From Piromyces finnis finn (Eukaryota; Fungi; Neocallimastigomycota), in contig MCFH01000028.1 of NCBI GenBank assembly GCA_002104945.1, positions 1-64,000 on the forward strand: DNA of 64,000 nt, given 5' to 3'. Of the stretch, positions 18,900 through 54,766 are shown in pieces. The notes beneath the pieces are model-generated. The model was given only the letters and a program-made list of their open reading frames with translations, was not told where the DNA came from and did not search any database. The position numbers were made by a program, and so were the translations under genes. Within the stretch, counting starts at the first letter, position 1, and every line of letters starts with the position of its first letter.

Positions 18900-19463
18900 A
18901 TGGAAAATAAACAAGTTAGGGCGGTATATAATGAAAACACTATTCGGGTATACCAAGCCTATTCTAAGGAAATTGGTGAAGAAGCTGTAAGATTAGGAAC
19001 TTTTGGACCGAAATTTAAATTAAGTAGAATGACTTGGATAAAACCTTCATTTTTATGGATGATGTATCGTTGCGGATGGGCAACAAAAGATAAAAATCAA
19101 GAATGTGTATTGGCAATAGATATTAAAAGAGAAGCCTTTGATTATATTGTAAAAAATGCAATTTCTTCAAGAAGACCAGACATTACTGAATGTACGGTTA
19201 CGGCTGAAGAATGGAAAGAAAAAGTTAAAAATTCAGATATTCGAATTCAATGGGATCCTGAAAGAGATATTCATGGAAATCCCTTAAATTATCGTTCCAT
19301 TCAGCTGGGTTTAAGAGGAAAAGCAGTTGAAAATTATGTTAAAGAATGGATTGTTCATATTGAGGATATAACAAATTATGTACAAGATTTAAATCAAAAG
19401 AAAAAAGAAGGAATAGATATTATACCCCTTTTACCAAAAGAAAAGGTTTATTCCATGTCCTAA
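18900..19463 (+). CDS. DUF4291 family protein, intronless, bacterial-like
   Basis: 187-aa ORF with the family motifs IRVYQAY, RMTWIKPSFLWMMYRCGWA, IRIQWDPERD and RSIQLGL. It has no introns and no low-complexity tracts. Confidence 0.85.
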   Translation: MENKQVRAVYNENTIRVYQAYSKEIGEEAVRLGTFGPKFKLSRMTWIKPSFLWMMYRCGWATKDKNQECVLAIDIKREAFDYIVKNAISSRRPDITECTVTAEEWKEKVKNSDIRIQWDPERDIHGNPLNYRSIQLGLRGKAVENYVKEWIVHIEDITNYVQDLNQKKKEGIDIIPLLPKEKVYSMS

Positions 19464-20568: not shown

Positions 20569-23500
20569 TTAAAAGAGTTTTGTAACAAATGACAAACAGC
20601 AACTTGAATTAATTTGATATTCAATGTTGAAATGCTTTTTTTTATTATTATCATTGTTAAGATAAGTTAAAGCTAATTATTAGTAGTATAAAATTATAGC
20701 TAAAACTTTTTTTTTTTTAAAAAATAAAACTTTTTTTTTTTTTAATTAAAGAAAAGTATTAATAATTTTATTTATTATTCTATATCCCTTAATTGTAATA
20801 ATGTAATAATTCAAACCATTGTAATTTAAATAATAATAATAATTGATATATAAAAGAGTTCTAATAATGGAAAAAGTTTAAAAAAACGCAGATTACATCA
20901 AGGTAAAATAGACTTTGGAAAATTTGAAACTAAAGTTAATTCACAAAATGATTTGAAATCTTCGTCCAATTCATCTTCTATCGTTTCGTCTTATTTTCCC
21001 TTAAATTCAACATCAAATAAGAAATCAATACATTTACATCAACAAATGTTATCAGATTTAAATTATAAAAAGGTTTCATCGTCTGTGGTCTTAAAGCGAA
21101 TTCAAAATGAGTATTATAAGGAACAAGAACAAAAAGAAAAAAAGTATGAAGACTATGTAGAAAAAATAATAGAAAAAAACCCTTATTATAAAAGAATAGA
21201 AAAACAAAAAGGTGAAAACAAAAAACCTCGTCGAAGAACACAGGAAAACAATCAAGAAGAAAGTAATGCAAGTCCAATAGAAATAAATGATGAGGAGGAG
21301 GATGAATGTAAAAGAAAAGAAATTCGTCGCCATTCAACAATTATTATTAGTGACGATGATGATGATGAAGATGAAAAGGAGGATGAAAATCATAATAATA
21401 ATAAAGATAAAAAGAATGTTAATGATTATGATGATAAGGCATATGATGAAATTACCGATGATACGAAAAGTAATTCAAGTCAAGAAATTATTGTAAAAAA
21501 GAAGGTGTCAGGTATTAAACGAAAAAGATCAAGGATTATTGAAGATGATGATGAAGAAGAAGAAGAAGAAGAGAACAATTCTACTAATAAAAACAAATCC
21601 TCCATAGAGGATAAATCAATAAATAGGTCACAAAAGAGTATTATAAAATTATTAGATAGTCCTTTAAACAAAGAAATGAAATCAAAAGTTGATCAAACAA
21701 CCCCACACTCATCGTATAAAATATTAAATGGAATTGATCATTTCAATCTAAATCAGTATTTAAAAGACACTACATTAAAACATAATCGAGTTAATTATCA
21801 ACTTAGTTTAAGAAAAAAGAAAGTCAAGGATACCTCAACACTTGAGAAAAAAAGTCATGATACATTAAAAATTGACATGGAGAGTAAAACACATTCTAGT
21901 CAAAATATAAATGAGGAAAACAAAAGAATAGATAATAAAAAAGATGAGATGTGTCAGGAAGATTCAATTGAAGAAGAAGAAGAAGAAGAAGAAGAAGAAG
22001 AAGAGGGAACAAGTAATGCAGAAACAGTTGAAGCAGATGATGATAATGAAATTAGTTTAATGAACGAAAGTGACAGCGGAGAAACTCAATCCATTTTAAA
22101 AAATAAAGGTTCAATTATTTTGTTTGAAGATGATGAAATATTCGATGAGAATTACCAAAATCAAAATGATACTAGTGAATGTAAGGATCCAAGGAAAAGT
22201 AATTATCAAAATCAATTTATATTAAATATATTAAAGAATAAATATAGTTTAAGGAACAATACCAGTCATTATTATCATGGTAAAAATAATGTTGATACTA
22301 CAATTGATAAAAAAAATAATGATAATAGCAATTACCACCCCACCAACCATTATAGAAAAATCAATAGCAATAATGATATTAGTATTATGTCTAATGTAAC
22401 AGATTTAGAGGATGAAAAGAGTAATAGTAGTCATCAAATAAATGAAAGGAATAATATTAATTGTAGGAAGGATGACTATTTGAATAATAATAATTTGAAA
22501 AAAATAAAAAATAATAGTACTGATTTAAGACCAAAGATTAAATTAGGAAATTTATATGATTATATAAAAATTGTGAAACATAAAGATAGTTATGATCGTA
22601 GGAAAAATAATTCAAAATTGGTTTCGGTTTCATCGATAGCTTCTTCATCATCATCCTCAATGACGTCAATGAATACAACTAAATCTTTAAATAAGCGTAT
22701 GAAAATGCCAACATCAACTGTAAAACAACCTCAAATTACTCAGAGTCAAACATTAAATAAAAATAGAAATAATTATTATTTGGAATTAAATAGGAAAAAG
22801 GATAAAAAAGATAATAATGATAATGATAATAATAATATTAGTAGTAGTGGTGGTAGTAGTAGTAATAATAAAAATAATGATAAAATAATTAAGGATAAAG
22901 TAGAAAATGGATATAATATTGAAATTGATTATGATCATATTATTAATAATTTAAATATGGATTCTAACGTTAATCATACTAATCATACTTTCCATATAAA
23001 TAAAATTAACATTAATCAACAACAGAATGAAAGAAAGTTTAGTAATGAAGAAGAAGTGATAGTCATATCAAGTCCTCCTGTTATTGCTGTGCCAACTCCT
23101 CCTCCTCCTCCTCATCCTAAGGAGATAACCAACAACGACGTATCGAAAGAAACAAGAATATCAACATTTGCTATTCCAACAACTCCGCCACACCCACCTT
23201 CATCATGGATATCCATTTCTTACTTAACATCTAATATAATAACTGATAATATTATACCGTATCTTTTTCAAGATCAAGATCAAGAAAATGGAAAGCTAAA
23301 TTTTAATTATGAAAAAAGTAATTGTCTCTTACAATTCCTTTTATCTGATGTTATGAAATGGTTTTCAAAATCATTGTGTTTTGCTTCTCCATATCATCTT
23401 TTTCAACATCTTTGTAATCTTCCACTTCAAGAAATGGCAAAGGTAAAGATCTCACCCCATTTTAAACTTTTGAATAAAGAAATTTATGAGGATTTAAATC

Positions 23501-24391
23501 AATTAGGACTTGATTATTATTCAAATCGTTCGTAAACATAACTGTTTTTTTTTTTTTTTTTTTTTTTTTTTTATTATTATTAATATTTGTATATATTTAA
23601 GTTTTAATATTCAAAAATTGTAGTAAAATTGTAAAATTTTGATGTTTTTATTAACTCTATTATACTATAAATATTTCTCCTTAATTTATATAAAAAATGG
23701 TATTGATGATTAATGTATTAATATATTTTATATAATTATATAATTATTATATTATTTTTCTTTAGAGCTAACAAAAGAAGACTATAAAAAAATTTTAATC
23801 AACAAAAGAAAAGAAGTTGAACGTTTTTTAAGACATTTTGATTTACAGCCATTATTTGGAAATTATATTGGGTTAAGTCGAATGGAAAGATATCAACGAG
23901 CCATAGTCATGGCACTTTTAGATGACCTATACTATCATTATTATAATTTGTCCAAAAAACAAAATTCAGCCGTGTTGTTACCGTCACACCTCTCTAATAA
24001 ATATAGAATCCTAAAAAGTAGTATGAATAACTTTTTTCATAAAACAAAACAATATGTAAAATCCAAGAAGGAAAAGAACGTTGAAGAACAAAAAACTATA
24101 GAGATGCTTGATAAACAAATTAAGCATTATCAAAATAAACTAAGATTAATTTATTCAGAAAGCTCACCGACATCGTCATCACCGACGTCTTCATCTTTAT
24201 CCAATGAAAAAAAGAAAGTAGTATGTGGAGATGATGATGATGTAAAAACAAAACTATTAAAAGATGATATTTATACACTTTATGAAAATTATGGTGGATT
24301 TTGGCCACCTCAACCAGTATTAGGATTTATAGAAAGTTGTGAAGTAAATGATAAAGAAATATTAGAATCTATTAATTTTAAACCCTACTAG
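20388..24391 (+). CDS. ~1130-aa mostly disordered protein with a C-terminal split DNA polymerase delta subunit 4 (POLD4/Cdm1)-like domain, 3-exon model
   Basis: Exons 20388-20483, 20857-23527 and 23766-24391 sum to 3393 nt and stay in frame. The GTTCGT donor at 23528 and TAG acceptor at 23765 join ORF 20953-23535 to ORF 23882-24391. The joined segment EVERFLRHFDLQPLFGNYIGLSRMERYQRA matches the POLD4/Cdm1 core L..FD....G...G..R..R..RA. Confidence 0.6.
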
Positions 24392-27874: not shown

Positions 27875-28837
27875 ATGCGTCTTGATATTCCAGAGTTAAG
27901 CCAAGGATCTGTTGATTCAAACGTTTTATTAAAGAATATTTATATCTCAAAGATGAAGAATAATAATGCTGGTTATTTTTCATTCTTAAGAGAAGCTGAA
28001 ACCACTAAATATATTCCAACCGGTCGTTCTTTAGGTACTGGTTCATTTGCTATTGCTATTGAAGTTGCTCATATTGAGACCGGAAAGAAATATGTTGCAA
28101 AAATCATGACTTCTGATAAATTAAGAGGTTATGAAAAGGGAATTGAAAAAGAAATTCAAATCATGCAATATTATTCCAATGCTCTTTCCAAAATGGATAA
28201 GGACAACAATGACAACAACAACAATCTTTTAAGATTAATTGATTGTTTTAGAATTGTTACTAATGGACAAACACATATTTGTATGATATTAGATTTATGT
28301 GATCCAAATGATTTATTTGATGCTATTTGTGATAATGGAGCATTTTGTGAAGAAGAAGCCAAGAAAATGATGAAACCAATATTTGAAGCAGTTCATTGCT
28401 TACATCAATGTGGTATTGTTCATCGTGATATTAAGGCAGAAAACATTCTTTTAAAAGATGGCAAACCAATTCTTGCCGATTTTGGATTAGCAGAATTTTG
28501 TGAATTAGGTAAAAACACATTGACGGAATATTGTGGAACACCTGGTACTACAGCACCAGAAATCATTAAGAATGAACCTTATGGAAATAGTTGTGATATG
28601 TATTCCCTTGGAGCATTAACATACTTTTTATTAGCCGGATATCGACCATTTGATTGGGCAGAAGATGCAAGAGATGAAAGAGATGCAGTATTAAATAATA
28701 AATTTAGTTATCCAGAAGAAAGTTTCGGAGAAGTATCACTTGAAGCCCAAGATTTCATCAATAAATGTATGATGATTGATCCGAATGAAAGAATGACATC
28801 TGAAGAAGCCTTAAACCATCCATGGTTAAAAGAATGA
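27875..28837 (+). CDS. Ser/Thr protein kinase, CAMK group, copy 1 (intronless)
   Basis: GTGSFA glycine loop, YVAK lysine, HRDIKAEN, DFG, CGTPGTTAPE, DMYSLG, and the ending ERMTSEEALNHPWLKE. Confidence 0.93.
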   Translation: MRLDIPELSQGSVDSNVLLKNIYISKMKNNNAGYFSFLREAETTKYIPTGRSLGTGSFAIAIEVAHIETGKKYVAKIMTSDKLRGYEKGIEKEIQIMQYYSNALSKMDKDNNDNNNNLLRLIDCFRIVTNGQTHICMILDLCDPNDLFDAICDNGAFCEEEAKKMMKPIFEAVHCLHQCGIVHRDIKAENILLKDGKPILADFGLAEFCELGKNTLTEYCGTPGTTAPEIIKNEPYGNSCDMYSLGALTYFLLAGYRPFDWAEDARDERDAVLNNKFSYPEESFGEVSLEAQDFINKCMMIDPNERMTSEEALNHPWLKE

Positions 28838-30617: not shown

Positions 30618-31580
30618 ATGCATCTTATTCAATCTGAATTCAACAAGGAATCTATTGATTCTAACGTTTTATTAAAGAATATTTATATCTCAAAGATGAA
30701 GAATAATAATGCTGGTTATTTTTCATTCTTAAGAGAAGCTGAAACCACTGAATATATTCCAACCGGTCGTTCTTTAGGTACTGGTTCATTTGCTATTGCT
30801 ATTGAAGTTGCTCATATTGAGACCGGAAAGAAATATGTTGCAAAAATCATGACTTCTGATAAATTAAGAGGTTATGAAAAGGGAATTGAAAAAGAAATTC
30901 AAATCATGCAATATTATTCCAATGCTCTTTCCAAAATGGATAAGGACAACAATGACAACAACAACAATCTTTTAAGATTAATTGATTGTTTTAGAATTGT
31001 TACTAATGGACAAACACATATTTGTATGATATTAGATTTATGTGATCCAAATGATTTATTTGATGCTATTTGTGATAATGGAGCATTTTGTGAAGAAGAA
31101 GCCAAGAAAATGATGAAACCAATATTTGAAGCAGTTCATTGCTTACATCAATGTGGTATTGTTCATCGTGATATTAAGGCAGAAAACATTCTTTTAAAAG
31201 ATGGCAAACCAATTCTTGCCGATTTTGGATTAGCAGAATTTTGTGAATTAGGTAAAAACACATTGACGGAATATTGTGGAACACCTGGTACTACAGCACC
31301 AGAAATCATTAAGAATGAGCCTTATGGAAATAGTTGTGATATGTATTCCCTTGGAGCATTAACATACTTTTTATTAGCCGGATATCGACCATTTGATTGG
31401 GCAGAAGATGCAAGAGATGAAAGAGATGCAGTATTAAATAATAAATTTAGTTATCCAGAAGAAAGTTTCGGAGAAGTATCACTTGAAGCCCAAGATTTCA
31501 TCAATAAATGTATGATGATTGATCCAAATGAAAGAATGACAGCTGAAGAAGCCTTAAACCATCCATGGTTAAAAGAATAA
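30618..31580 (+). CDS. Ser/Thr protein kinase, CAMK group, copy 2 (intronless)
   Basis: Same motifs as copy 1, and near-identical to it after about codon 13. Confidence 0.93.
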   Translation: MHLIQSEFNKESIDSNVLLKNIYISKMKNNNAGYFSFLREAETTEYIPTGRSLGTGSFAIAIEVAHIETGKKYVAKIMTSDKLRGYEKGIEKEIQIMQYYSNALSKMDKDNNDNNNNLLRLIDCFRIVTNGQTHICMILDLCDPNDLFDAICDNGAFCEEEAKKMMKPIFEAVHCLHQCGIVHRDIKAENILLKDGKPILADFGLAEFCELGKNTLTEYCGTPGTTAPEIIKNEPYGNSCDMYSLGALTYFLLAGYRPFDWAEDARDERDAVLNNKFSYPEESFGEVSLEAQDFINKCMMIDPNERMTAEEALNHPWLKE

Positions 31581-33681: not shown

Positions 33682-34653
33682 ATGCGTTTAATTAATTTCG
33701 ATATGCCAGAGTTCAACAAGGAATCTATTGATTCAAACGTTTTATTAAAGAATATTTATATCTCAAAGATGAAGAATAATAATGCTGGTTATTTTTCATT
33801 CTTAAGAGAAGCTGAAACCACTAAATATATTCCAACCGGTCGTTCTTTAGGTACTGGTTCATTTGCTATTGCTATTGAAGTTGCTCATATTGAGACCGGA
33901 AAGAAATATGTTGCAAAAATCATGACTTCTGATAAATTAAGAGGTTATGAAAAGGGAATTGAAAAAGAAATTCAAATCATGCAATATTATTCCAATGCTC
34001 TTTCCAAAATGGATAAGGACAACAATGACAACAACAACAATCTTTTAAGATTAATTGATTGTTTTAGAATTGTTACTAATGGACAAACACATATTTGTAT
34101 GATATTAGATTTATGTGATCCAAATGATTTATTTGATGCTATTTGTGATAATGGAGCATTTTGTGAAGAAGAAGCCAAGAAAATGATGAAACCAATATTT
34201 GAAGCAGTTCATTGCTTACATCAATGTGGTATTGTTCATCGTGATATTAAGGCAGAAAACATTCTTTTAAAAGATGGCAAACCAATTCTTGCCGATTTTG
34301 GATTAGCAGAATTTTGTGAATTAGGTAAAAACACATTGACGGAATATTGTGGAACACCTGGTACTACAGCACCAGAAATCATTAAGAATGAGCCTTATGG
34401 AAATAGTTGTGATATGTATTCCCTTGGAGCATTAACATACTTTTTATTAGCCGGATATCGACCATTTGATTGGGCAGAAGATGCAAGAGATGAAAGAGAT
34501 GCAGTATTAAATAATAAATTTAGTTATCCAGAAGAAAGTTTCGGAGAAGTATCACTTGAAGCCCAAGATTTCATCAATAAATGTATGATGATTGATCCAA
34601 ATGAAAGAATGACAGCTGAAGAAGCCTTAAACCATCCATGGTTAAAAGAATGA
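33682..34653 (+). CDS. Ser/Thr protein kinase, CAMK group, copy 3 (intronless)
   Basis: Same motifs. The N-terminus is 3 aa longer, and the sequence is a mosaic of copy 1 and copy 2 variants. Confidence 0.93.
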   Translation: MRLINFDMPEFNKESIDSNVLLKNIYISKMKNNNAGYFSFLREAETTKYIPTGRSLGTGSFAIAIEVAHIETGKKYVAKIMTSDKLRGYEKGIEKEIQIMQYYSNALSKMDKDNNDNNNNLLRLIDCFRIVTNGQTHICMILDLCDPNDLFDAICDNGAFCEEEAKKMMKPIFEAVHCLHQCGIVHRDIKAENILLKDGKPILADFGLAEFCELGKNTLTEYCGTPGTTAPEIIKNEPYGNSCDMYSLGALTYFLLAGYRPFDWAEDARDERDAVLNNKFSYPEESFGEVSLEAQDFINKCMMIDPNERMTAEEALNHPWLKE

Positions 34654-36968: not shown

Positions 36969-39305
36969 ATGTATTATACACCATTGAATACATCAACTCA
37001 TAATGAAGATTATAATTCTAATAATCAAAGATTTAATGGTAATAGTTTAAATAGAAATGTTAATACTACTCCAATACCTGGAATGAATCAAACACCTTTA
37101 CCTATACCCAACTCAGCAATTACTGGTAGTAGAAGTAGTAATTCTTCTTTTAATAATAATTATCAAACGAACCATAACCATAGTAATGTATCAGTAAGTG
37201 ATGAACTTCCTTTATTGGAATTGGGTGATCTATCCATAGTTGAACCTTCTTCTAATCAAAATTTTGTAGTGAGGTCTTTATTAAATCCTCGTAGTCATAT
37301 GCAAAGCCAACATCGTTTTTATTGTAAAAAAGCGTTAAGACCTAAATTACTACAACAAAGAAATTCTAGAGAAAAAAAATTTCCATATTCAACAATTAAA
37401 AGTAAATTATATATATATATATTTCATTATGTGTATTTCATATAATTGTTTTTATTCATTAATTATAATTTTTAATTATACTCTACATTTATATTAAATT
37501 TTAGAAACCAATGGAATAAGAAAAAATCAATCCATTTTAAAATATTCAAAATTAATTGACTTTGGTCTTGCAGAACAATTAGAAGGCATTAATATTAATA
37601 AAGAAGCAAAATCTTCACTTTTTCTTCCTAGCAATAATGGAAAAATTCTTAATGTTGAGAGCTTATTCCCAAATAAATATATAGAGTTAAAACATAATTC
37701 TAAAAATAAATATGCTAATCGAAATTTACTATCCATACCAAAATCTCCAAAAAAACTAAATTTAAATGATTTAGAAAATTCAATGATATCACAAAGAGAA
37801 TTCAAGGTAAACGTTGAATAAAGTCAAATAAAGCATTGATAGAATATAACAATTTATTATTATTTTTTTTTCCTTTTATTTAGTGATAAAATTCAATATT
37901 TCATTAATATAACTTTTATTTTTATATCTATATAAAAGTTTGATAATTTAATTAGCGATTGGAAATTCATAATAAACTCTCTAGGTATTTCAGGCGTAAG
38001 TTTTTTTTTTTATTTTTTTTAATTCAATTAAATATGAATATATATTTTAAAAGCGAAATAAATACTTAAATACTTTTTTATTTTATTTTATTTTATTTCT
38101 TATATATTTACTTATTCATTTATCCTTTATTATTATTAATGATTATATATATGTTTTAGGATTTAAATATGCTTAAAATATTCACCTTAGGAACTAGATT
38201 TTCAGATTTAGTTCATAAAATTCAACAAGAAGATACACCTAAAAAAATATACATTTCCAATATTGAAAAACCAAATATACCATCAGATTTTAATACTCTC
38301 GATATACTTACTAATCAATCTATAGGTAAATATAATATATACTCTATTATATTTATTTTTTAGATTTTATATTAATTATCATCATCATCATAATACTTGA
38401 ATATATTATTGTAATACTTAATAAAATGATCCTAGTGAATAATTTAAACTCTCAAGTTGATGCTATTCTATTAAGTGTCATTGATAATGATAAAAATGGA
38501 TTGGATACTTCTCAACGTTTAGCAGCACAAAACTTATTAATTAAAAAGAGTACAGCGCCATTAATTCGTTCAATATTTATATCGGAATATCTATCAGGAA
38601 GAAATATGATTTCACCCAACAATGAATTTAGACGTAGATTATGTGTTCTATTAGATGATTATGAATTAATTCGTTTTATTTCAAGTCTTGTTGATTCTGA
38701 AAAATTGACTCAAGATGATCAAGATGTTCTTAATCGAATCTTAGTAGAATCTTCACTTTCAGATATTATTTATGAAGATCAAGGTGATATTATGTATAAT
38801 GACAATAAAGATTCTTTAAAAACATTTACTGAAAATAATGGGGATGATGATAATGAAAATACTATGAAACAATATGGTCAAATATTACGAACAATTTATT
38901 CCGCTTCAAAGAAGTCTTCATCAGAAGAAAAAATGATTGAAAATTTCTTACAGAGATCATCCTTTTTAATTAAAACAAGTAAAATTAATCAAAAAAAGAA
39001 AAAAAGGGAAACCTTTTTTACTGGTAATACCGATTTTCAAGATCAGTTATCATCAACTTCTCATCTACTGAAATCATATAATCAAACCCCGTTTAGTATA
39101 TCATCATCCTCATCATCTTATTTACAACAACTTCAACAGCAACAGCAACAACAACAACAATTACATCAATTATATGAACAAAACCAACAATCACTAAGAC
39201 AACAAAATCAATCCTTTGATAATTTCTTGGGTCAACTTAATTCGTTTAAACTTAATAATCAATCTATATTAGAGGAACAAATGAGTCAACAACAGCAACT
39301 ACAGC

Positions 39306-39358
<53 letters not shown>

Positions 39359-39375
39359 CTACAACAACAGCAACT

Positions 39376-39414
<39 letters not shown>

Positions 39415-39799
39415 GCAACTACAGCAATTACAACAACAACAACAACAAATCCCAATACCACATACACAAATCCATAGTACAATACCTGATGCTTTTTCTT
39501 TAGAAAGTAGAAATTTAGATAAAAGTACTAATAATCACAATAATTATGAGTTAGGTTCCAATTTACCATATAATTCAGTGGTAAATCCTTTATTTTCATC
39601 AGTACCATCTTCACAATCTTTTGAACAACATCCTGTTCAAACCATGCCTAATAATAATCCACATAATATACCAGAAACTCCTACTACTCCTACACCTGAA
39701 GTACCAACACCTTTAACTCCTATTTTGCAACAACAGCAAACTCAAACAAATGAACCGGTTACTCAATCTTTACCCTTAAATTTTAATTTGAATCTATAG
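36969..39799 (+). CDS. Hypothetical protein with N-rich N-terminus, central helical region and long poly-Q tract, 5-exon model
   Basis: Exons 36969-37401, 37505-37806, 37939-37995, 38160-38325 and 38436-39799 join in frame through GT..AG. I recognised no family. Confidence 0.65.
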
Positions 39800-40593: not shown

Positions 40594-40943
40594 TTAATTG
40601 AATGCATTGTTAAAATCTGCAAAGAAATTATTGTTAGTACTTGAAGTATTATTATTACTGTTATTGTTATTATTGGCATTATTATTGCTATTATTATTAA
40701 AGAATGAGAAGGATGCATCATTGTTATTATTATCAAAGAAGTTTTGGTTATTGTTATTGCTGTTACTGTTTAAATTATTATTGTTGCCAAAGAAATCTTG
40801 ATTGGTATTACTAAAGAAGTCTTGGTTATTGTTATTATTACTACTATTACCAAATATATTATTATTATTGTTATTATTATTATTATTTGATAAGAAAACA
40901 TTATTACTGTTATTGTTATTCGATGACATGAAAACATTGTTGC

Positions 40944-41006
<63 letters not shown>

Positions 41007-43028
41007 TTGGGCTATCAAAACTTAATAAATCTACATTATTAGTGTTACTTCCTGCTGGTACTAAAGCGGTAGAATTACTATTTCCAGATGCTATTTGAGA
41101 AAATGGATTGTTCATCGATACATTATTATTATTGTTGTTATTATTACTGATACTATTTCCTGTTTTTTGAGCCATAATTGCACTAAATGAATTACTACCT
41201 CCAACATTACTGTTACCGGTATTTTGGGCCATGATAGTACTAAATGTGTTATTATTATTTCCGTTGTTATTAGATTGATTCATTAAATTACTAAAAACAT
41301 TAGTATTGTTAGTAGTACCATTTCCTGTACTCTGAGCCATAATACTATTAAATACATTATTGCTATTATTATTTCCATTTCCAGTAGTTTGTGCCATTAT
41401 GCCACCAAATGAATTATTATTATTATTATTATTATTTCCATTGCCAGTAGTTTGTGCCATTATCGTACTGAATGAGTTATTATTATTTCCATTTCCAGTA
41501 GTTTGTGCCATTATCGCACTGAATGAGTTATTATTATTTGAATTATTACCAGTATTCTGAGCCATAATATTATTAAAAACATTATTACTATTATTATTTC
41601 CATTGCCAGTATTGTTTGACATCATATTACTAAATACATTATTATTATTAATGTTATTATTAGAGTTTCCTCCAGTTTTTTGAGCCATGATTGCACTAAA
41701 GGAATTAGAGTTTTGTTGTGAAGACATTGAATTATTGTTTGAATTATTAGCAAATGGATTAGTTGAACCGGTTAACATATTACTTTGATCTGAGGACATC
41801 AATAACTTGTTATTATTGATGGTACTCATTCCATTCATGTTATTCATATTGTTCATTCCATTCATGTTATTCATATTGTTCATTCCATTCATGTTATTCA
41901 TATTGTTCATTCCATTCATGTTATTCATATTGTTCATTCCATTCATGTTATTCATATTGTTCATACCATTCATATTATTCATATTGTTCATACCATTCAT
42001 ATTATTCATATTGTTCATACCATTCATATTATTCATGTTGTTCATACCATTCATATTATTCATATTGTTCATACCATTCATATTATTCATATTGTTCATA
42101 CCATTCATATTATTCATGTTGTTCATACCATTCATGCTATTCATATTTCCATTATTTGCAAATGGATTTCCATTACTAAAGAAATTATCCATATCATTAT
42201 TTTGAATATTTTGGAAATTTTGAGTTTGAGATTGTTGCTGCATTTGGAAACTTAAAAGTTGTTGTTGGGCAGCTAAAAAGTTATTTGGTATGGAATTATT
42301 ATTATTATTAAATGAAATTAATTGGTTATTTTGACTGAATTGATATTGAGCTCCTGGTAATGGGGTTGGTTGACCTAACTCTTCATCTAAACTAGCAAAG
42401 AAATCAACACTATTATTAGTAGTCTTTTTTGCTGATGGCCTTGATGCTCTTGAATGAGTTGGTGTTTTAGTTGGTGGTTCAATTCTTGGTTGAACAGTTT
42501 CAGATGTTTTATTATCAGTTTTAACTTAACATTTTTAAAATATTATATTTTATAAATATGAAAAAAAAAAAAGATATCATTAATATATTATTCTATTAAA
42601 TATTTAAATCAATATAACCTACTTTGAGATGGTTTATTATCTTTTGGTTTATTTTTATTTTTAATGTAAGCTTCTCTAGTAGCATCAAAATCTGGATTAT
42701 TTAAATATTCTTGTAATGCCATAACAAGAGATATTGGAGCCTAATAAATTTTTTAAAGATAAAGGATATTTTAATTTAAAATGTATATACTGTATATGTA
42801 TATTGTTTTTTCTCAATTTATTTATCACTTATATATAAAATTAAATAATATTCTATTTAGTACTCACATGCTTAATATATGGAATATCTATTTGAAGAAC
42901 ACTTTGTAAACTTCTTGCAAGTTCAAAGAATTCCATAACCCTTGTTGTTTGTTGAACGAACATCTTATAAACTTCAAGAGCAATACGTGCTTGTGATTGA
43001 ATCATTTCAAAATATACCTCTTTTTTTT

Positions 43029-46225: not shown

Positions 46226-49200
46226 CTAGTTTTCTTTATTTTTTTTAATTAATGGATTTTTGGATATTTTATCTGTTTCATCAAATTCTTCCGCTATATA
46301 ATCGTCAAAAAGATCAATCAAGTACTGATTTGAATTACGTTTATTATTTTCTTCTGGGGTATTCTTTTTTATAAAGGTGACATTATTATTGATTATTGAA
46401 GAAGATGAATGAGAAAGCGTTAATGAATTACCTTTATTTATCATCATAGACTTTCCTTTGGTTGGTGATGATAGACTATTATTTGATTTAGATAGCTGTT
46501 TTAGGGAAGAACTATTTCTTCTATTATTTTCTATTAAAGGAGGACTACCGGGCATAAACGATTGACTTGAGGAAGGATGATGTGAAATTGAAAATCGTTT
46601 CAACGAATTCGTTTTCTTACCTTCAAAAATATTATTTGATGAGAATGACGACGTTCTTCCCGTTAAAACAATACTGCTTCTTTTACTATTACTATTCGAT
46701 TTATTATTTAAACTGTGGATTGACGTTCTTTTATTTGAATCAATATCTGTTGTACTGGTATTCTCTGAAATTGATTCCATTTCACTTGGTATATTCTTTT
46801 TGATGGTATTGAGCGTTTTAACGGATTCTAAAAATGAAATACGTCCCTTGGAAAATAATGGATTGGAGGTGGAGGGTTCCTCACTTGGTGATTTAACATC
46901 AATAACTTCTTCTTCTTTTTGTTTAGGTTGATTATCCGGCCATAGCCTTTGTATCATTTTACATAAATCATCTTTTTTAATAGGCTTGGTAATGTAATCA
47001 TCCATTCCAGATTCTAAGCATTGTTCCTTATCACCGGGAAGTGCTGCTGCAGTAACCGCAACAATTTTTATGGGACTTAATGGATATAATTGACGAATTT
47101 TACCGGTTGCCTTCAAACCATCCATTAACGGCATATGGAAATCCATAAAGATTAAATCGTAATTCTTTTTCTTTAATGCTTCTAATACTTCTAAACCATT
47201 ATTAGCTGTATCTGCTGTAATCTTAAGATAACTATCCAACATTCTTTTTAATACATTTTGATTAATAATATTATCATCAGCAACTAAAACACTTAAACCA
47301 CTGTAATCTAATGAATTAACCTTTTTGACCACCGGATTCATACCACCAAGAAGATCAGTAAAGCTTGCTGAGGCCTGGATACTCTTTAAATCTAAAACAC
47401 TCTTAAATAGCTTGGTTTGCTTAAACGGTTTAATAAGAATATCGGTACGTTTAAAGTGAATAGTTTTTAATTTTTTCTTTGATTCTTCCATGGACCCCTG
47501 CTTCATAATAAATAAAACAGGAATTTCAAATAAAATACTATTCTCTGGATAGGATGAAAATTTATCTAAAAATTCAAATCCATTTTTATCCATATCAACA
47601 ATAATGGAATCAATCGGTTTTGTATCCTTACTCATGTTCATACGTTGATACTTTATTCCTTCTATTAATTGATCTGGCGTTTCAAAGACTTTGAATTGAG
47701 TATTCCATTTTGTAAAAAGTTTTGTTATTGTATTATCGATATACTCTTTTGAATGTAAAATGGCAATATTTCTATTTTCTAAACCTTCAAATTGCTTTTT
47801 CGATGGTTGGGCACTCTTTGCACCATAAACCTTAATTGTAAATGAAAATTTCGTTCCTTTTTTATTCTTACCACCTTCAACCCAAATTCGACCTCCCATT
47901 AATTCACTTATTTCTTTACTAATTGCTAAACCTAAACCTGTACCACCATATTGACGTGTGGTGGAAGAGTCAACTTGTGAAAATGGGATAAAAAGTCTAT
48001 CCATCTTTTCTTCGGATATACCAATACCAGTATCGGCTACTGTAAACTTTAATTCATACGCTGTACCTAAATCTTTACTACTCTTTAAATGATCTTTTTC
48101 AAGCATTGAAGCTAATAAATCATTTGCCTTTGTATCCTGTTCTACATGGGATGATAATTGAATAGGTGGTAAAGAATTATTCATTACCGTAGGTGTGTAG
48201 ATAGTAGTATTGCCATTATTTAAGCTTGCGGTATTTGATATTACTGGATTTTGAATTAAATTTGGATTATTTAATGAATCTTGAAGCAATAAATTATTTT
48301 GGGATTGTTCTTGAACTACAGTTGCTGATGCTAATAAATTACTTTGGGAATTTGATTTAATCATTGACTTAGAATTAATTGAAGCTTGTTGTGGTGGTAA
48401 TAGGGCTTGTGGTTGTATTTGTGTTGATAATATGGATTGCGTAGTGTTATCGTTATTAGCATTGTAGATATTTCCTTGATGTAATGAAGCATTGTTAGGT
48501 GGTAGTTGATTTAAAAATGGATTGGAACTATTTTCTGCTAACTTATTTCCAAAATATTTGTTTTGAATATTTATTGGGTTACTATAGTTATTTGTTTTAT
48601 TTAATAATTTTAATTGATTTTGTTGTTGTAGTTGTAAAACATTTTGATGAATAATTTCAAAAACATTAATGGGTCGAGATTCCACTGTAATCTTAATTTC
48701 ACCTTCTTTGGTAAATTTAACTATTTTATTTAACATATATATATGTATTGTTAATGATAATTATATTATTATTGTTAAGGAATAAGTATTAAAATATTAA
48801 TTTTCCTTTTATTCTTAAGGAATATTACTATCATATATAAAATATTCATTATTTATTAATAGATAGTTTACCTGCATTATTAGCCAAGTTTAATAAAACT
48901 TGATTAATTCTTGTTGGATCCCCAATAATAGTGTCTGGACAATCATCTGAAATTTCATAATATAAACTTATTTCATTTTCTAATGTTTTGGGGGCAATGA
49001 TTAATAAACAACTTTCAATGGTACTGATAATATTAACCGGTCTACTTTCTAATATCATTTTTTGACTTTCAATCTTAAGGTAATCTAAAATATTATTTAA
49101 AATACCTAAAAGAAATTCTCCTGAACTAATAATTGTTTCAACATAATCTTTTTGAAGCGAAGATAAATTAGTTTCTTTTAAAAGGGTTGCAAAACCTAAT

Positions 49201-52200
49201 ACTGAATTCATTGGGGTACGAATTTCATGTGACATATTAGCCAAAAATTTACTTTTCATTTCTGTAGCACCTTCTGCTGCTTCTTTTGCGGCTTTAAGAT
49301 CTATTTCTATTTTCTTTCTATATTCAATTTGATCTTGTAATTCAATATTTCTAACTTGCATTTCTTTTAAAAGTTGTGATGTTTTATTCTTTTCAAATTC
49401 TAATTCTGCTGTTCTTTGTTTAACAAGATCTTCCATATGATCACCATAGGATTCCAACTATTTATTTAAATTTTTATATTTATTAAATAATAATATATAG
49501 GTGTAAATATTTGGGTGTTGAATTTGAATAATAAATGATTTATATATACATATATATATTTAAAAATCTCACCATTTCAACCATTTTATCGGCAACACTA
49601 TTAAATTGTTTAGGATTAATATCTCTAACCATCATTGCTAATGTTGACATTGCTGGTCTATCATCAGGGTCTTCTGCCCAACATTCACATATAATTTTAT
49701 TCATATCTTGTATACCTTCTTCTTCACCATTTAATACTTGCATCGTTGGTCTCAACGTACTATTGCAAACAATGTTTTTAATAATATCTTTTGGATTATA
49801 ATCCATGTCAGAGAATGGTAATTGTCTTGTCATGATTTCATTAAGGATAATACCAATACTATAAATATCTCCTTTTTGATAACCAACAACTTGGTAGGCA
49901 TCACCATCAATATGAATACATTCAGGAGCTGTCCATAATAAATCGTAATAACTATCCCCATTTTCTATTTCATCATAATCATTTGCAGAACGAATGGTCT
50001 CTTTTACTTCTCTTAAACCAAAATCGGTAATTTTTAATTCCCAACGACTACTAATTAAACATTTTCTTGAGGTTAAAAGTCCATGGTATCCAATTTTAGA
50101 TTGATGTAAATATTGCATACCTTTAATAAGATCACTAATTAATGAATATTTGAATTGAAATTCTAGTTTATGATCTTGATGAGCAAGAATTTCCATTAAA
50201 CTACCCTTGCCAACATATTCTAAATTTTTTTTTTTTTTAAATTTATTACATTTTTTATAATTATAATGAAAAAAAAAAAAAGGAGGTGAATTTTATTAAT
50301 ATTTTATGAATAAGTAGTCAATATATATTAGAAATTTATTATTATTATTATTATTATTATTTACCAGTAATTAATCCAATCCCATCTAAAACATAACATA
50401 TACCCACAAAATGGATAAGATTTGGATGTCTTAATTCTCTTAATTCATAAATTTCTTCTCTCATTCCCTGGGATAGTGTGATTTTTCTAGATTTAATTTG
50501 TTTAACAAACACTTGCAAACCATTTCTATGTTTTTATTTTTAATATAATATTAATATAATATTGACGTCATCGTATATTCCCTACTAGTATAATTTGTAT
50601 TTTTATTTTTACCTATATCCGATCATTCCTGTTCTTGTATATTGCCAAGGGGTATCCGTGACTAATTCTTCATAATCAACATCCCAAAGCCAACCTTTTT
50701 TTCTTTGCCATTTTCCTTTTGATTTATACAATACATATATTATTGGAAGAAGTACTACAAGAAAAGAAATAAAGATAATATATCCATTATAATCACAATT
50801 TTCACCAAAGTACATAAAAGTACATTCACATATGCAATTCTCATTTGATTTTCCATTCTTACATATTTTTTCACATTTTGGTTCACTATCTTTATAGTCA
50901 ATACTCTCTTTAGAATCCTTAATAATACTTTTTTTCATATCCTCTATTTTTTCTTTTCCAAATAACGTATTCTTTAAATCATTTTTTATACCAATAAATT
51001 TAAAAAGGTCGTTATCTGAAATTTCATTTATAGCATCAATACCTTCTTTTATTGATTGTTTATAGTCACTACTATAATAAGAAATAATAAAATTGTATAA
51101 TCAAAAAATAAAAAAGATATAAATTATAAAATTTTAATTTTGTTTGATATCAATATAATAATTATTCTATTCAGAGATATAAATGATAGTATAAATAAAT
51201 AAATAAGGGTACATACTTTTGAGATTCTATTGAAAGTGAAGGCTGAAAAATAATTCCATTTTTATTCAAATCTTCTTCATTTGTTATATTAAATTTATCA
51301 TAATGGCCTAGTGATACTATTTGTTGATTTCTGTATTTAATTTCAATATAATTATCCATAAAATAAGAATACTGTGTTATTAGGTTAAGTGATATACTAT
51401 ATATATTTATGAAACCACGATTGTTCCGTTTTTTTTGGTCAAAAATGGTATCATAATTATAATTTATATATGTAGTATTTAATGATTCACGTTTTTTTTT
51501 TTCAAAATATTTATAGGTATCAATATAATTTATTATATAAATATATTATATTAATAAGGTTATAATTAAGATAATAAAAGTAATTTATATTGTTTTATTT
51601 TGAAGCAATAGCATTTAATGTTAAAAAATTTGGACATCCTATAAAATAGATAGATTACCTGAAAATTTTTTTACTTATTTCATCGGATTCCTCTAAATAG
51701 CCTACACTTCGAATTTTTTCATTATTATTTAAATACTTATTGATATTATTTTTCATAGTATTTTTATTATTTTTCATGTGATAATGAACTATACCACAAT
51801 TATAATTATTCTCAAGATCAATTTTTAATTTTCCGTTATCATCGAAATTACTTTCTTTGATAATAATATTATGGAAAGTTACATTTTTTGTTGAAAAATA
51901 TAAATTGTTTCTTGCATCTGAAATACCTTTTAGGAATGAATTAAGAGCAATTATATTTCCATATAATGATTTTTCTCCTTCTTTTTCTTCCTGTAAATAA
52001 CATATAGAGCGTAGCTTTTCTACTACTCCTGCTGAAATATATCCTGCAATATATCTTTGAAAAATATATATATATATATAATTTATTTTAATATAAATTA
52101 ATTTTTTCGTTAAAGTATTATTTCCTAATTATATACCTGGCTTTCCAATGTTCCCATGCTATTAAATGAAGGTTGTTATTTATATTTTCTTTTTTTCTCA

Positions 52201-52594
52201 TATCATCATTACTGTTTTCATATTCACCAACTAACACAAACATAGCATCTTTATATTCATTTGCGAGATTTTCAAATTTTGTATAAAAAGCCATTGTATT
52301 ACCGAAGAATAATTTATTACCATTACCAATTTCATTTTTAATATCATCCTCGGAAGTTTTGTCTGAACATTTTACTGATAAACCCTTGTCTTGTAATTGC
52401 TTACAAGCCTCTTTTTCCTGATTGTATGAAAAATTATCATCTTGTAAAAATACAGCTGTTCCATAATTATTACTCAATATAGGTTCTTGAGGTATTACTT
52501 TATCCGTACATATTATTATCAATAATATTGAAAAAATAAAGGTATTCAAATGAAGAGATTGTAAAAATAATGAAATTACATTTACATTAAACAT
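46226..52594 (-). CDS. Single-pass receptor hybrid histidine kinase (~1790 aa): signal peptide, BMP/PnrA-like domain, EGF-like module, TM, pseudokinase (KHD), coiled coil, HisKA, HATPase_c, degenerate REC, REC; 8 exons
   Basis: Exons 52594-52137, 52054-51659, 51396-51217, 51071-50613, 50525-50365, 50219-49573, 49457-48872 and 48720-46226 sum to 5382 nt with consistent phases. Motifs: H-box FLANMSHEIRTPMN (His codon 49229-49227), N-box QVLLNLANNAVKFT, G1 DTGIGI, G2 GGTGLGLAIS, and receiver VLVADDN...LIFMDFHMP (Asp codon 47143-47141)...VTA...ITKP. Confidence 0.9.
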
Positions 52595-54766
52595 GATTTT
52601 TCTTTTTTTTCTTTCTCTTCTTTAATTAAATTTATATATATATATATTTTTTTTTTTTTTTGAAGACTATTTTGAAAAATGATTAATTATTAACTTCCAT
52701 TAATATTGCAAAATATTAATTTATATTGTTATAAATAAATTTGACCATACATGTTAATATATATATATATATTTTTAAATTATATTTATATAATTTTAGT
52801 TATTTTTATACAAAAAATAGCTATAGTGGTAGGTATAATAGAATGACAAATTTATAAATTATTTGAAACAAAGTACTTGATATAATAGTTCTTTTTTATT
52901 ATCTTTATTTTTCAACTTTTTTTTTTTTCTCTTTTCCTCTTTCTTTTTTCTTTTCTCTTTTCCTGGAGTAAAAAGGATAAATTAATTTATTGGTATTTAA
53001 AGTTCGAGGATTTCAAAATAATGAATTTCGAGAATTTTAAACTTTAATTATTATTATATATTAATATATGGTTTAATAAAATGTTTTCTTTTATTAAAAA
53101 AAAAAAAAAAAAAACAAGTTGAATTTTAATTTCTATAAATGAATTTCTTTATCTTCGATAAAAGTAAAAATTATTCTTTTATTTGTAGTAAAGAAACTTT
53201 TTTTTTTTATCTTATTGTTGTTGATAGTAAATTTTATTTTTTTTAAAATTAATTTTTGTATTTTTATTTAATTGTTCAAATAAACATTATGATATTGTTA
53301 AAAAGTGTTAATGATTTTTAATATTTCTATTATATAATTTGATTTCCCTTTATAATTATTATTATTTTATTTCTTCTTTTATTTCTTCTTCTTCTTTTTT
53401 TACTTAAAATTTTATTATGATTTTTAAAATGGAATTCCTTTTTTTTTGTACTATAATTATTTAAATTATAATTACTTATACTAATATTATTATTATATTA
53501 TTATTGGTAAATATTTATCTTATGAAGAAATTTAATAAACAATTTTTTTATTATTAAAAATGAATGGAAAATACAATTTAATTCTAATATATTGATAATA
53601 AACTTTTAATATGTTACAGCCATAATAAATTTTATATGTCCTATAAAAAAAAAAAAAAAAACACTTGAAGCTTTTTGGAATAATTATAATAAAATGCTTA
53701 TTTTACTTTGATAATATTATTTAAAATTCATTATATTTTTAAAAAGAATATTGAATTTTATGAGCTACAAAAATACTTTATTTAATAAAGGAATAGTGTA
53801 ATTTATTTCATTTTAATCCTCCCTTTTTAGAGTTTAATTTTTTTATTATATGAAATAAAGTTTGGTGTAAAAAATTTTAAAATTCATCTTAATAAAAAGA
53901 AAAGTATTTATAAGCATAACTAAAAATAGTTCAAGAAGATAATAATCATTTATTATTTTATTTATAATATTTGATAATACACATACTTTTAAAATTTTAG
54001 TATTATTAACACATTTTGAAAATATAATTTTTTAAAAAAAAATATTTATATATTATTTTTCTTTTTTAAAATAAAACCATTAATATATATATATAAAAAA
54101 AATAGTTTCATGGGAAAATAATTTAAATTATAGAATGGAGACAAAAGAAAAAATTGTATTTTTTTTTTATTTTCTTATTGAAAAACAAGCAATGATAATT
54201 TTATTATTTTATAAAAATATTAATTTACTTTATTTCATTGCAAAAACTTTATATTTTGTTAGTTTGAATAAAAGCAAAACAATTAAAACTCTTCAATTTT
54301 ATATAGATAATGATATATCACTATTATATCCTTTTAATAATAATTTTTAATTCATTGCTCATTTAAACTAATAATGCTACTTTCTAACATTATGGGTTTT
54401 TTTTTTTTTTTTTTTTTTTTTAATAAATATTTAAAGATGTTGTATCAATTAAAAAGACTTAAAAAATATTTTATTAAAAAACTTTTTTTTTTTTAATTTA
54501 TCCATTAATTATTATAATTTATTAATAAATAAAAAGTCAAATATAATGTTATATTATAATGGTTATGATTATGATTATTTATTAATTATTGATTTAATTC
54601 TTGTTGTTATAAAAAAATAGGTTATGGTTATTATTATGGCTATTATTTGATGATTTAATTAGCATATTAAAAAAAAATACTTATTATTATTATAAGATTA
54701 AAAATGTTATTAATGTAATTTTGAAAAGAAGAAGAAAAAAAAAATGGGGTTTTATTTTTTATTATA

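Follow-up and report, generated by a model that had tools for sequence, protein, structure and literature searches.

A predicted membrane receptor of Piromyces finnis that joins a receptor-guanylyl-cyclase-class pseudokinase to a hybrid histidine kinase

The gene, its domains and its transcript

The window analyzed here comprises 64,000 nucleotides (nt) of the anaerobic gut fungus Piromyces finnis (Neocallimastigomycota; assembly GCA_002104945.1, contig MCFH01000028.1, positions 1 to 64,000 of the forward strand). On its minus strand, between 46226 and 52594, lies a gene for a predicted membrane protein in which a kinase-homology domain (KHD) of the kind found in receptor guanylyl cyclases runs through a signalling helix into a hybrid histidine kinase. 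Splicing of eight exons, which were joined by hand from open reading frame (ORF) pieces and checked by script, gave a single open frame of 1793 codons plus a stop codon. All seven introns (82–262 nt) have GT..AG ends, and the G+C content across the region is 13–33%, with the minima in introns and intergenic stretches. The features of the gene are listed below (aa, amino acids; TM, transmembrane).

46226..52594, minus strand: complete coding region; eight exons, one open frame once spliced, GT..AG introns
52137..52594, minus strand: exon 1, aa 1-152, with signal/anchor segment 1-30 and the start of the ectodomain; junction 1 collinear with the related protein P0151
51659..52054, minus strand: exon 2, ectodomain; about 40% identity to the P0151 ectodomain
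51217..51396, minus strand: exon 3, ectodomain, 180 nt; the least supported exon, with flanking introns of the same phase
50613..51071, minus strand: exon 4, end of the ectodomain, Cys-rich EGF-like cluster aa 411-437, TM helix and juxtamembrane segment; the related contig L002 matches 50769-50642
50785-50720, minus strand: TM helix aa 441-462, by hydropathy, within exon 4
50686-50663, minus strand: juxtamembrane WDVDYEEL, aa 474-481, within exon 4
50365..50525, minus strand: exon 5, pseudokinase N-lobe (beta-3 Lys506, alpha-C Glu522); Pfam PK_Tyr_Ser-Thr 2e-4 for a 53-aa piece, below Pfam's cut-off; L002 joins exon 5 to exons 4 and 6
49573..50219, minus strand: exon 6, remainder of the KHD (HGL 597-599, Lys604, DFG 617-619, APE) and start of the signalling helix; Pfam PK_Tyr_Ser-Thr 2.6e-26, NPR1 8e-34
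48872-49457, minus strand: exon 7; Pfam HisKA
46226-48720, minus strand: exon 8; Pfam HATPase_c and Response_reg
49359..49593, minus strand: cyclase-receptor-type signalling helix aa 761-800, QRT 781-783, across intron 6; from the NPR1 alignment of the related protein P0001, intron 6 being absent in the related contig L001
49260..49358, minus strand: coiled-coil extension aa 801-833, with two extra heptads; from the RT-to-His spacing and the AlphaFold2 helix 200-301 of P0001
49065..49259, minus strand: HisKA/DHp, phospho-acceptor His844 at 49229-49227; Pfam HisKA 4.7e-20, H-box SHEIRTP, fold match to GacS 7z8n
47822..48941, minus strand: HATPase_c, with N box 957-966, G1 1192-1197, F 1206-1211 and G2 1221-1227; interrupted by intron 7 and an insert of about 200 aa
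48059-48652, minus strand: N/Q/S/L-rich insert of about 200 aa (aa 986-1183) between the N and G1 boxes; low complexity
47318..47785, minus strand: putative degenerate receiver-like domain aa 1275-1430, acidic pair replaced (ILHS); aligns to the first receiver of a bacterial hybrid kinase, P0257
46949..47290, minus strand: receiver aa 1440-1553, with DD 1444-1445, Asp1489 (47143-47141), Thr1519 and Lys1541; Pfam Response_reg 5.1e-29 and motifs
46229..46930, minus strand: S/N/K-rich C-terminal tail of 234 aa (aa 1560-1793), without a recognised domain

Pfam placed PK_Tyr_Ser-Thr in exon 6 (and, below the cut-off, in exon 5), HisKA in exon 7, and HATPase_c (3.5e-20) and Response_reg in exon 8, with E-values far beyond chance. 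A Guanylate_cyc domain was not found by Pfam in any exon, and HisKA stands after the helix instead. Hydropathy revealed a signal-like N-terminal segment and a sole strong helix at about residues 441–462, followed by the basic stretch KSKGKWQRKKG, which puts the ectodomain at about residues 31–440 and the cytoplasmic part from residue 463 onward. Within the latter, VFVKQI (503–508), YHGLLTSRK (596–604), TDFG (616–619), WTAPE (647–651) and CWAEDPDDRP (731–740) mark the KHD, and MLESYGDHMEDLV begins at residue 767. The histidine kinase motifs are all intact (SHEIRTP 843–849, NLANNAVKFT, DTGIGI, FIPFSQ and GGTGLGL); the H-box His of the DHp domain, the N, G1, F and G2 boxes, and the DD pair, D1489, T1519 and K1541 of the receiver, which together define a hybrid histidine kinase, are all present, and in NCBIfam this half of the protein was closest to hybrid kinases of the BarA/TorS type. 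An initial annotation of this DNA had given a spliced length of 1793 residues, a set of peptide strings, and the order TM helix, kinase-like domain, HisKA-HATPase-REC. The eight-exon model reproduced the length, every quoted string was located at its expected place in the spliced protein, and the order was borne out by Pfam exon by exon, by the motifs and by hydropathy. Inserts of variable length also occur at the N box–G1 site in Mucoromycota relatives, where the kinase-core matches are split.

The gene is expressed. In three RNA runs from the same organism, a share of 0.65–0.70 of the 31-mers sampled from 48600–52700 was present; the predicted shares are 0.68 for the full eight-exon spliced mRNA, 0.52 for exons 1–6 alone and 0.16 for exons 7–8 alone. 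Of the seven junctions proposed initially, 4, 5 and 6 were reproduced by intron-less contigs of relatives: in L001, which encodes P0001, exon 6 is followed by exon 7 at 88–89% nt identity and the 115-nt intron is gone exactly at 49573|49457, and in L002 exons 4, 5 and 6 are joined without introns. Both contigs come from one JGI sample, and their ends read into the next intron, as expected of pre-mRNA. For junction 1, collinearity was seen with P0151, another product of that sample; junction 7 was placed by frame logic and by the N-box NLANNAVKFT that is reconstituted across the splice, and junctions 2 and 3, on either side of the 180-nt exon 3, by GT..AG ends and frame logic.

The possibility that the pseudokinase and kinase halves are joined only on paper, with a membrane pseudokinase gene (exons 1–6) lying beside a separate hybrid histidine kinase gene (exons 7–8), had already been raised in the initial annotation as a matter of separate mRNAs. 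Although the exon 6 frame can continue into the intron and stop (ORF 49540–50196), and the relatives' contigs P0002/P0151 end by such intron read-through, P0001 (93% protein identity) reads on from exon 6 into exon 7 without a change of frame. Exon 7 offers no separate start ahead of the helix, and the intron falls inside the NPR1-type helix. In addition, more than 100 gene models in other fungi encode the same fusion, and the RNA word share agrees with all exons. We hold such an artefact to be extremely unlikely. As for exon 3, this exon and the end of exon 2 (51659–51760) align to the same P0151 segment with the pattern N.Y......I.S.G(Y/H). Exon 3 may be a small internal duplication or a cassette exon, the latter because its flanking introns share a phase and skipping preserves the frame; doubts about this exon leave the pseudokinase–kinase join untouched.

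The kinase-homology domain and the signalling helix

A comparison of exon 6 with all solved structures gave 120 bits for the natriuretic-peptide receptor NPR1/GC-A (E 8e-34), 78 bits for GC-C (9e-21) and 64 bits for B-Raf (8.5e-17). P0001, which holds the pseudokinase and the helix in one piece, reached 133.6 bits with NPR1 (E 8e-38); B-Raf remained the best ordinary kinase among the solved structures at about 64–67 bits, as against 120–134 for NPR1. The alignment of P0001 with NPR1 passes through MLESYGDHMEDLV.QRTAELE.EKNKTSQL and extends to NPR1 residue 818, which we take to be about the start of the cyclase domain. When the 40-residue helix alone was compared with the PDB no significant match was obtained, whereas the longer P0001 query did align to NPR1.

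An exhaustive search with exon 6 was made over 1.84 billion protein representatives, and the best 150 matches were examined. Three close relatives came first, followed by proteins with the pseudokinase–histidine-kinase order. Single-copy pseudokinase–cyclase receptors accounted for 101 of the 150 (an ANF domain was detected in 17 and not in the other 84) and were animal in every case that was looked up; the other members were KHD–HisKA proteins, pseudokinase-only fragments and multi-kinase gene models. No group X-type protein was among these 150 matches to the kinase domain. A cyclase probe matched animal proteins and none of the window protein's family.

The HRD motif is replaced by HGx in 25 of 25 cyclase receptors and in 19 of the 20 fungal members sampled. 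In the window protein the motif reads HGL, with Leu599 at the position of the HRD Asp, and Lys604 occupies the position of the catalytic Asn; without these two residues the pseudokinase is predicted to be catalytically dead. Retained are beta-3 Lys506, alpha-C Glu522 and DFG Asp617. The AlphaFold2 model of P0001, built from a 41-row alignment, had a pLDDT of 79, and its fold matches were GC-A structures at ranks 1–6 and the GacS histidine kinase at rank 7. On the strength of the NPR1 scores, the content of the best 150 matches, the absence of group X proteins and of GAF (which was found in no member of the pseudokinase–histidine-kinase family), the HGx motif and the fold matches, we assign the kinase-like domain to the receptor-guanylyl-cyclase class and not to the group X type. 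This was the reading of the initial annotation, which had also noted the loss of the catalytic aspartate and the run of the domain into a cyclase-type helix; all three points held, the last by virtue of the collinear alignment to residue 818, and the grouping with the Ser/Thr kinase domains of group X that it had considered as the counter-case did not appear among the best 150 matches.

Stand-alone cyclase-type pseudokinase genes were observed in tandem, at a spacing of about 3.3 kb, on metagenome contigs (L003:2984-9774, also L004-L008). One of their products, P0003, has 65% identity to exon 6; the ORF pattern repeats as 59-53-190/196-61 aa, and no histidine-kinase part was called near these arrays. 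They look like an expanded pseudokinase-only paralogue family in related fungi.

Signalling helices have been described as a switch that lies ahead of histidine kinases and, in cyclase receptors, connects pseudokinase with cyclase; in the same survey they precede about one-tenth of histidine kinases, and animal receptor cyclases are the only proteins in which they follow a kinase-like domain (PMC1592074). The window protein unites both contexts in a single helix. Between the Arg of the (E/Q/K)RT signature and the phospho-acceptor His, the spacing was 48 residues in 107 of the 111 family proteins measured, and 62 in the window protein, P0001 and one Mortierella protein, a difference of +14 that corresponds to exactly two heptads. 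AlphaFold2 predicted, for P0001, a single helix of 102 residues extending from the last pseudokinase helix through the H-box (200–301). What may be claimed about the register is limited to this 14-residue difference and the predicted helix.

Like the window protein, the natriuretic-peptide receptor cyclases (NPR1/GC-A, GC-C; 9bcv, 9bcs, 8fx4) are single-pass type I receptors in which an HGx pseudokinase leads collinearly through this signalling helix as far as the cyclase start. A juxtamembrane motif, W-x-V-x-x-E-(D/E)-(V/L), is presumably common to both. The window protein differs from them in having HisKA-HATPase-REC and no class III cyclase domain, in an ectodomain that is not ANF_receptor, and in the Lys at the catalytic-loop Asn, which cyclase receptors retain. 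The stretch before the beta-3 Lys, read by eye, also appears to be about 27 residues shorter than in NPR1.

The fungal family and its origin

The relatives retrieved with exon 6 were proteins of Actinomortierella, Linnemannia, Podila, Dissophora, Modicella and Mycotypha with PK_Tyr_Ser-Thr, HisKA, HATPase_c and REC, their ectodomains being Peripla_BP_4 with or without Ephrin_rec_like. Starting from one of these relatives, a word-indexed search gave, among the matches listed, more than 100 proteins of the order pseudokinase-helix-HisKA-HATPase-REC from Mortierellomycota and Mucorales, usually with two or three paralogues per genome. The KHD–HisKA order for which the initial annotation had pointed to early-diverging fungi does occur there, in these two lineages. 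Nearly all of these proteins are named "hypothetical protein" or "histidine kinase" in the databases, and a few carry automatic names: "RGC/RGC protein kinase" (Podila verticillata NRRL 6337), "Receptor-type guanylate cyclase gcy-13" and "Guanylate cyclase".

Members such as KAG0228929.1 of Actinomortierella wolfii, the protein of Podila verticillata NRRL 6337 and XP_052931599.1 of Mycotypha africana share with the window protein the cytoplasmic order, the HGx motif and a nearly identical H-box region, and the family is its sister in both trees described below. The differences lie in the ectodomain, which measures 700–1000 aa and is Peripla_BP_4 in the Mortierellomycota and Mucorales, whereas that of the window protein is shorter and unrelated, with a Bmp-like candidate fold; in a large insert in their pseudokinase; in their linker, shorter by 14 residues; and in the DFG Asp, lost in about half of those members and kept in the window protein.

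In the phylogeny of KHDs against receptor cyclases, a comparison suggested in the initial annotation, the window protein, three close relatives and the Mucoromycota members formed one group that was split from 24 animal cyclase-receptor domains with support of 100/99. In the tree of the DHp-ATPase-receiver part, the window protein was sister to the Mucoromycota family as against the best bacterial hybrids (92/70). The receiver-containing part had 75% identity to an Orpinomyces sp. gene model (eukprot jgi/Orpsp1_1) and 70–72% to metagenome proteins; the next matches were bacterial hybrid kinases at 33–40% identity. A Dictyostelium origin of the DNA, which its AT-richness and N/Q tracts had brought to mind, was set aside on account of the Orpinomyces match. 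Since the family spans Mortierellomycota and Mucorales too, the join of pseudokinase to histidine kinase would be ancient and not local. A module swap had been proposed for this gene, and a kinase output does stand where a cyclase would follow, but the arrangement is not peculiar to it, as more than 100 fungal proteins share the order. The simplest reading would be a single ancient fusion in early fungi, after which ectodomains were exchanged; the swap may have run from cyclase to kinase or in the reverse direction.

A different history would be that the gut-fungus gene was assembled separately, for example from a fungal pseudokinase receptor and a kinase module of rumen bacteria, or passed from one fungal phylum to another, and does not descend from a fungal ancestor shared by the family. 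Scored domain by domain, the kinase and receiver match selected bacterial hybrid kinases slightly better than they match the Mucoromycota members, although the bacterial comparison set represents the best of billions and the fungal set is unselected; moreover, the best bacterial matches are only 33–40% identical, which argues against a recent transfer. The ectodomains are unrelated and the linker is longer by 14 residues, yet the junction is collinear and the difference in length comes in whole heptads. Other fungal phyla had no member among the matches, and monophyly of the kinase module was supported by just 92/70 on a long branch; nevertheless, the best kinase–receiver tree also sets the window protein beside the Mucoromycota family, and the pseudokinase tree joins all fungal members at 100/99. 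Taken together, we regard a separate or transferred origin as unlikely and prefer descent from a common fungal ancestor.

A recent bacterial origin of the kinase half had been entertained as a candidate and was rejected: it arose as a summed-score artefact on double-kinase proteins and was not supported by the per-domain scores, by BLASTP (49–50% identity) and by the trees. A separate observation concerns Mastigamoeba balamuthi, where a 2327-aa model with four kinase domains (P0004; eukprot EP00727 P010557) holds ANF_receptor, kinase and Guanylate_cyc in receptor-cyclase order, the cyclase-adjacent kinase having HCD and not HGx. This model suggests that receptor-cyclase-like proteins occur outside animals, and it hints that the cyclase form is older than the opisthokonts. 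The Mastigamoeba genome paper mentions an expansion of guanylate cyclases (PMC8136499).

Several other signalling proteins resemble the window protein in part. Hybrid histidine kinases preceded by an inactive kinase domain of eukaryotic type are also found in group X (Candida albicans Chk1) and in Dictyostelium DhkG (PMC6324907, PMC1420674). In its canonical description, however, group X has GAF and no TM segment, whereas the window protein lacks GAF, bears a signal peptide and one TM helix, and has a kinase domain of the cyclase-receptor class. Sln1 and BarA/GacS/TorS likewise have a signalling helix directly before DHp and a C-terminal receiver; unlike the window protein, they carry two TM helices or HAMP/PAS inputs, and no pseudokinase separates the membrane from the helix. 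The green algal 2c-Cyclop/COP5-HKR1 combines histidine-kinase and guanylyl-cyclase parts in one membrane receptor (PMC6284317). The logic of 2c-Cyclop is the opposite of that of the window protein, running from rhodopsin through histidine kinase and receiver to a cyclase output, without a KHD. Judged by its sequence, then, the window protein is classed as a hybrid histidine kinase. The missing cyclase domain sets it apart from the receptor guanylyl cyclases; the missing GAF, the membrane anchor and a kinase domain of another class set it apart from the group X kinases.

In full-text literature searches, no account emerged of a histidine kinase fused to a pseudokinase of the cyclase-receptor type. 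The main eukaryotic survey recognizes groups XV/XVI (MS-HKI/II), restricted to Mucoromycotina, whose domains are not described in its text (PMC6324907), and in the Dictyostelium kinome paper the cyclase-receptor kinase class is given as metazoan-specific (PMC1420674). The present family may already have been counted within groups XV/XVI. The earlier suggestion of a type unlike the described fungal groups therefore stands with respect to group X and may not stand with respect to XV/XVI. As far as we have seen, the architecture is present in databases and seemingly absent from the literature.

Proposed signalling and neighbouring ORFs

We consider it probable that the gene represents the gut-fungus branch of an old fungal family and encodes an expressed single-pass type I receptor hybrid histidine kinase, with a cyclase-class pseudokinase, that signals as a dimer from His844 to Asp1489. 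In such a dimeric receptor, the binding of a ligand outside would act through the pseudokinase on a rigid coiled coil that keeps to a length of whole heptads; the coiled coil would set the autokinase or phosphatase state of DHp, and the phosphoryl group of His844 would be handed to Asp1489 and then to a downstream acceptor. Nucleotide may bind to the pseudokinase as an allosteric input, which is conceivable because beta-3 Lys, alpha-C Glu and DFG Asp are retained.

A number of points weigh against this reading, and the first group of them concerns the ectodomain. It had no match in Pfam or NCBIfam and no sequence match in the PDB; ANF_receptor in particular was not found by Pfam, although a single TM helix is present. 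Its AlphaFold2 model had a pLDDT of 40 and was not used for a fold search, and a profile of the Mucoromycota N-termini (Peripla_BP_4 ectodomains) had no detectable similarity to it. In the protein atlas, the nearest clusters were Bmp/PnrA-like in 96 of 100 cases (score 0.85) and, for the exon 1 piece, in 89 of 100 (0.84), scores that fall below the level counting as more than a lead. The ectodomain is probably a bacterial-type Bmp/PnrA-like solute-binding fold with a small Cys-rich module, the fold itself being a lead. We take the Bmp fold to be related to the type I periplasmic-binding fold of ANF_receptor. A homologue search from P0151 returned its own cluster only, and low-complexity words are suspected of filling the candidate list.

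The remaining points concern the cytoplasmic part and the output. A crude scan of the heptad register was noisy and not clean; the common ancestry of the kinase halves has moderate support, with the window protein on a long branch; and that all eight exons sit in one molecule is deduced from word shares and relatives. Furthermore, HPt proteins are absent from Neocallimastigomycota according to a 2026 review citing Fassler and West 2013 (PMC13769267), and a canonical relay would consequently be without its middle step.

It could be, then, that in the absence of HPt the kinase–receiver part no longer feeds a phosphorelay, and that the receiver acts intramolecularly, that signals leave via the pseudokinase or the long tail, or that the gene is decaying. 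Such a dead end would fit the 200-aa low-complexity insert in the ATPase domain and the 234-aa domainless tail. It would also fit the entry for Piromyces finnis in the main survey, which lists 0 histidine kinases (PMC6324907), were that count not contradicted by the gene described here; the count without HPt may be as incomplete. The H, N, G1, F, G2, DD, D, T and K elements are intact over a spliced frame of 5.4 kb in a gene that is expressed, and close relatives (70–93% identity) retain the same parts. The same 2026 review aligns Skn7 orthologues from Neocallimastigomycota (PMC13769267), and receiver-type regulators accordingly exist in the phylum. A dead end is, in our estimation, very unlikely, and signalling from His844 to Asp1489 in a dimeric receptor is the reading that we retain. 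Because an intact, expressed hybrid kinase exists in this fungus, either the published counts are incomplete or the relay is non-canonical.

Pseudokinase and signalling helix have been described together only in animal cyclases (PMC1592074); in the fungal family, this unit is not bound to the production of cyclic GMP and drives a histidine kinase through a linker that varies in length by whole heptads only. It offers a natural second output with which to study how a dead kinase gates a downstream enzyme via a coiled coil. Anaerobic gut fungi are of biotechnological interest, and the receptor is a candidate sensor of nutrients or host signals and a possible biosensor part. Its newness is limited by the fact that the family is already in public databases, unnamed or automatically named. 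On a broader and more doubtful level, we tentatively suggest that the KHD and signalling helix could be an old, output-independent transmission unit that predates the animal–fungal split, became linked to cyclases in animals and to histidine kinases in early fungi, and that the Bmp domain of the gut fungi might sense a gut solute (nucleoside or sugar) and feed an unrecognised or non-canonical relay.

Elsewhere in the window, no domain was found in the large ORFs 20953–23535, 38426–39799 and 40594–42243. A C-terminal piece of a type I DnaJ lies at 2546–3799 on the minus strand, and a full-length DUF4291 ORF (E 1.8e-69) at 18900–19463 on the plus strand. Three plus-strand ORFs, at 27875–28837, 30618–31580 and 33682–34653, are of near-equal length (320–323 aa); the two of them that were scanned encode an ordinary active-type Pkinase (E ~1e-56) unrelated to the pseudokinase.

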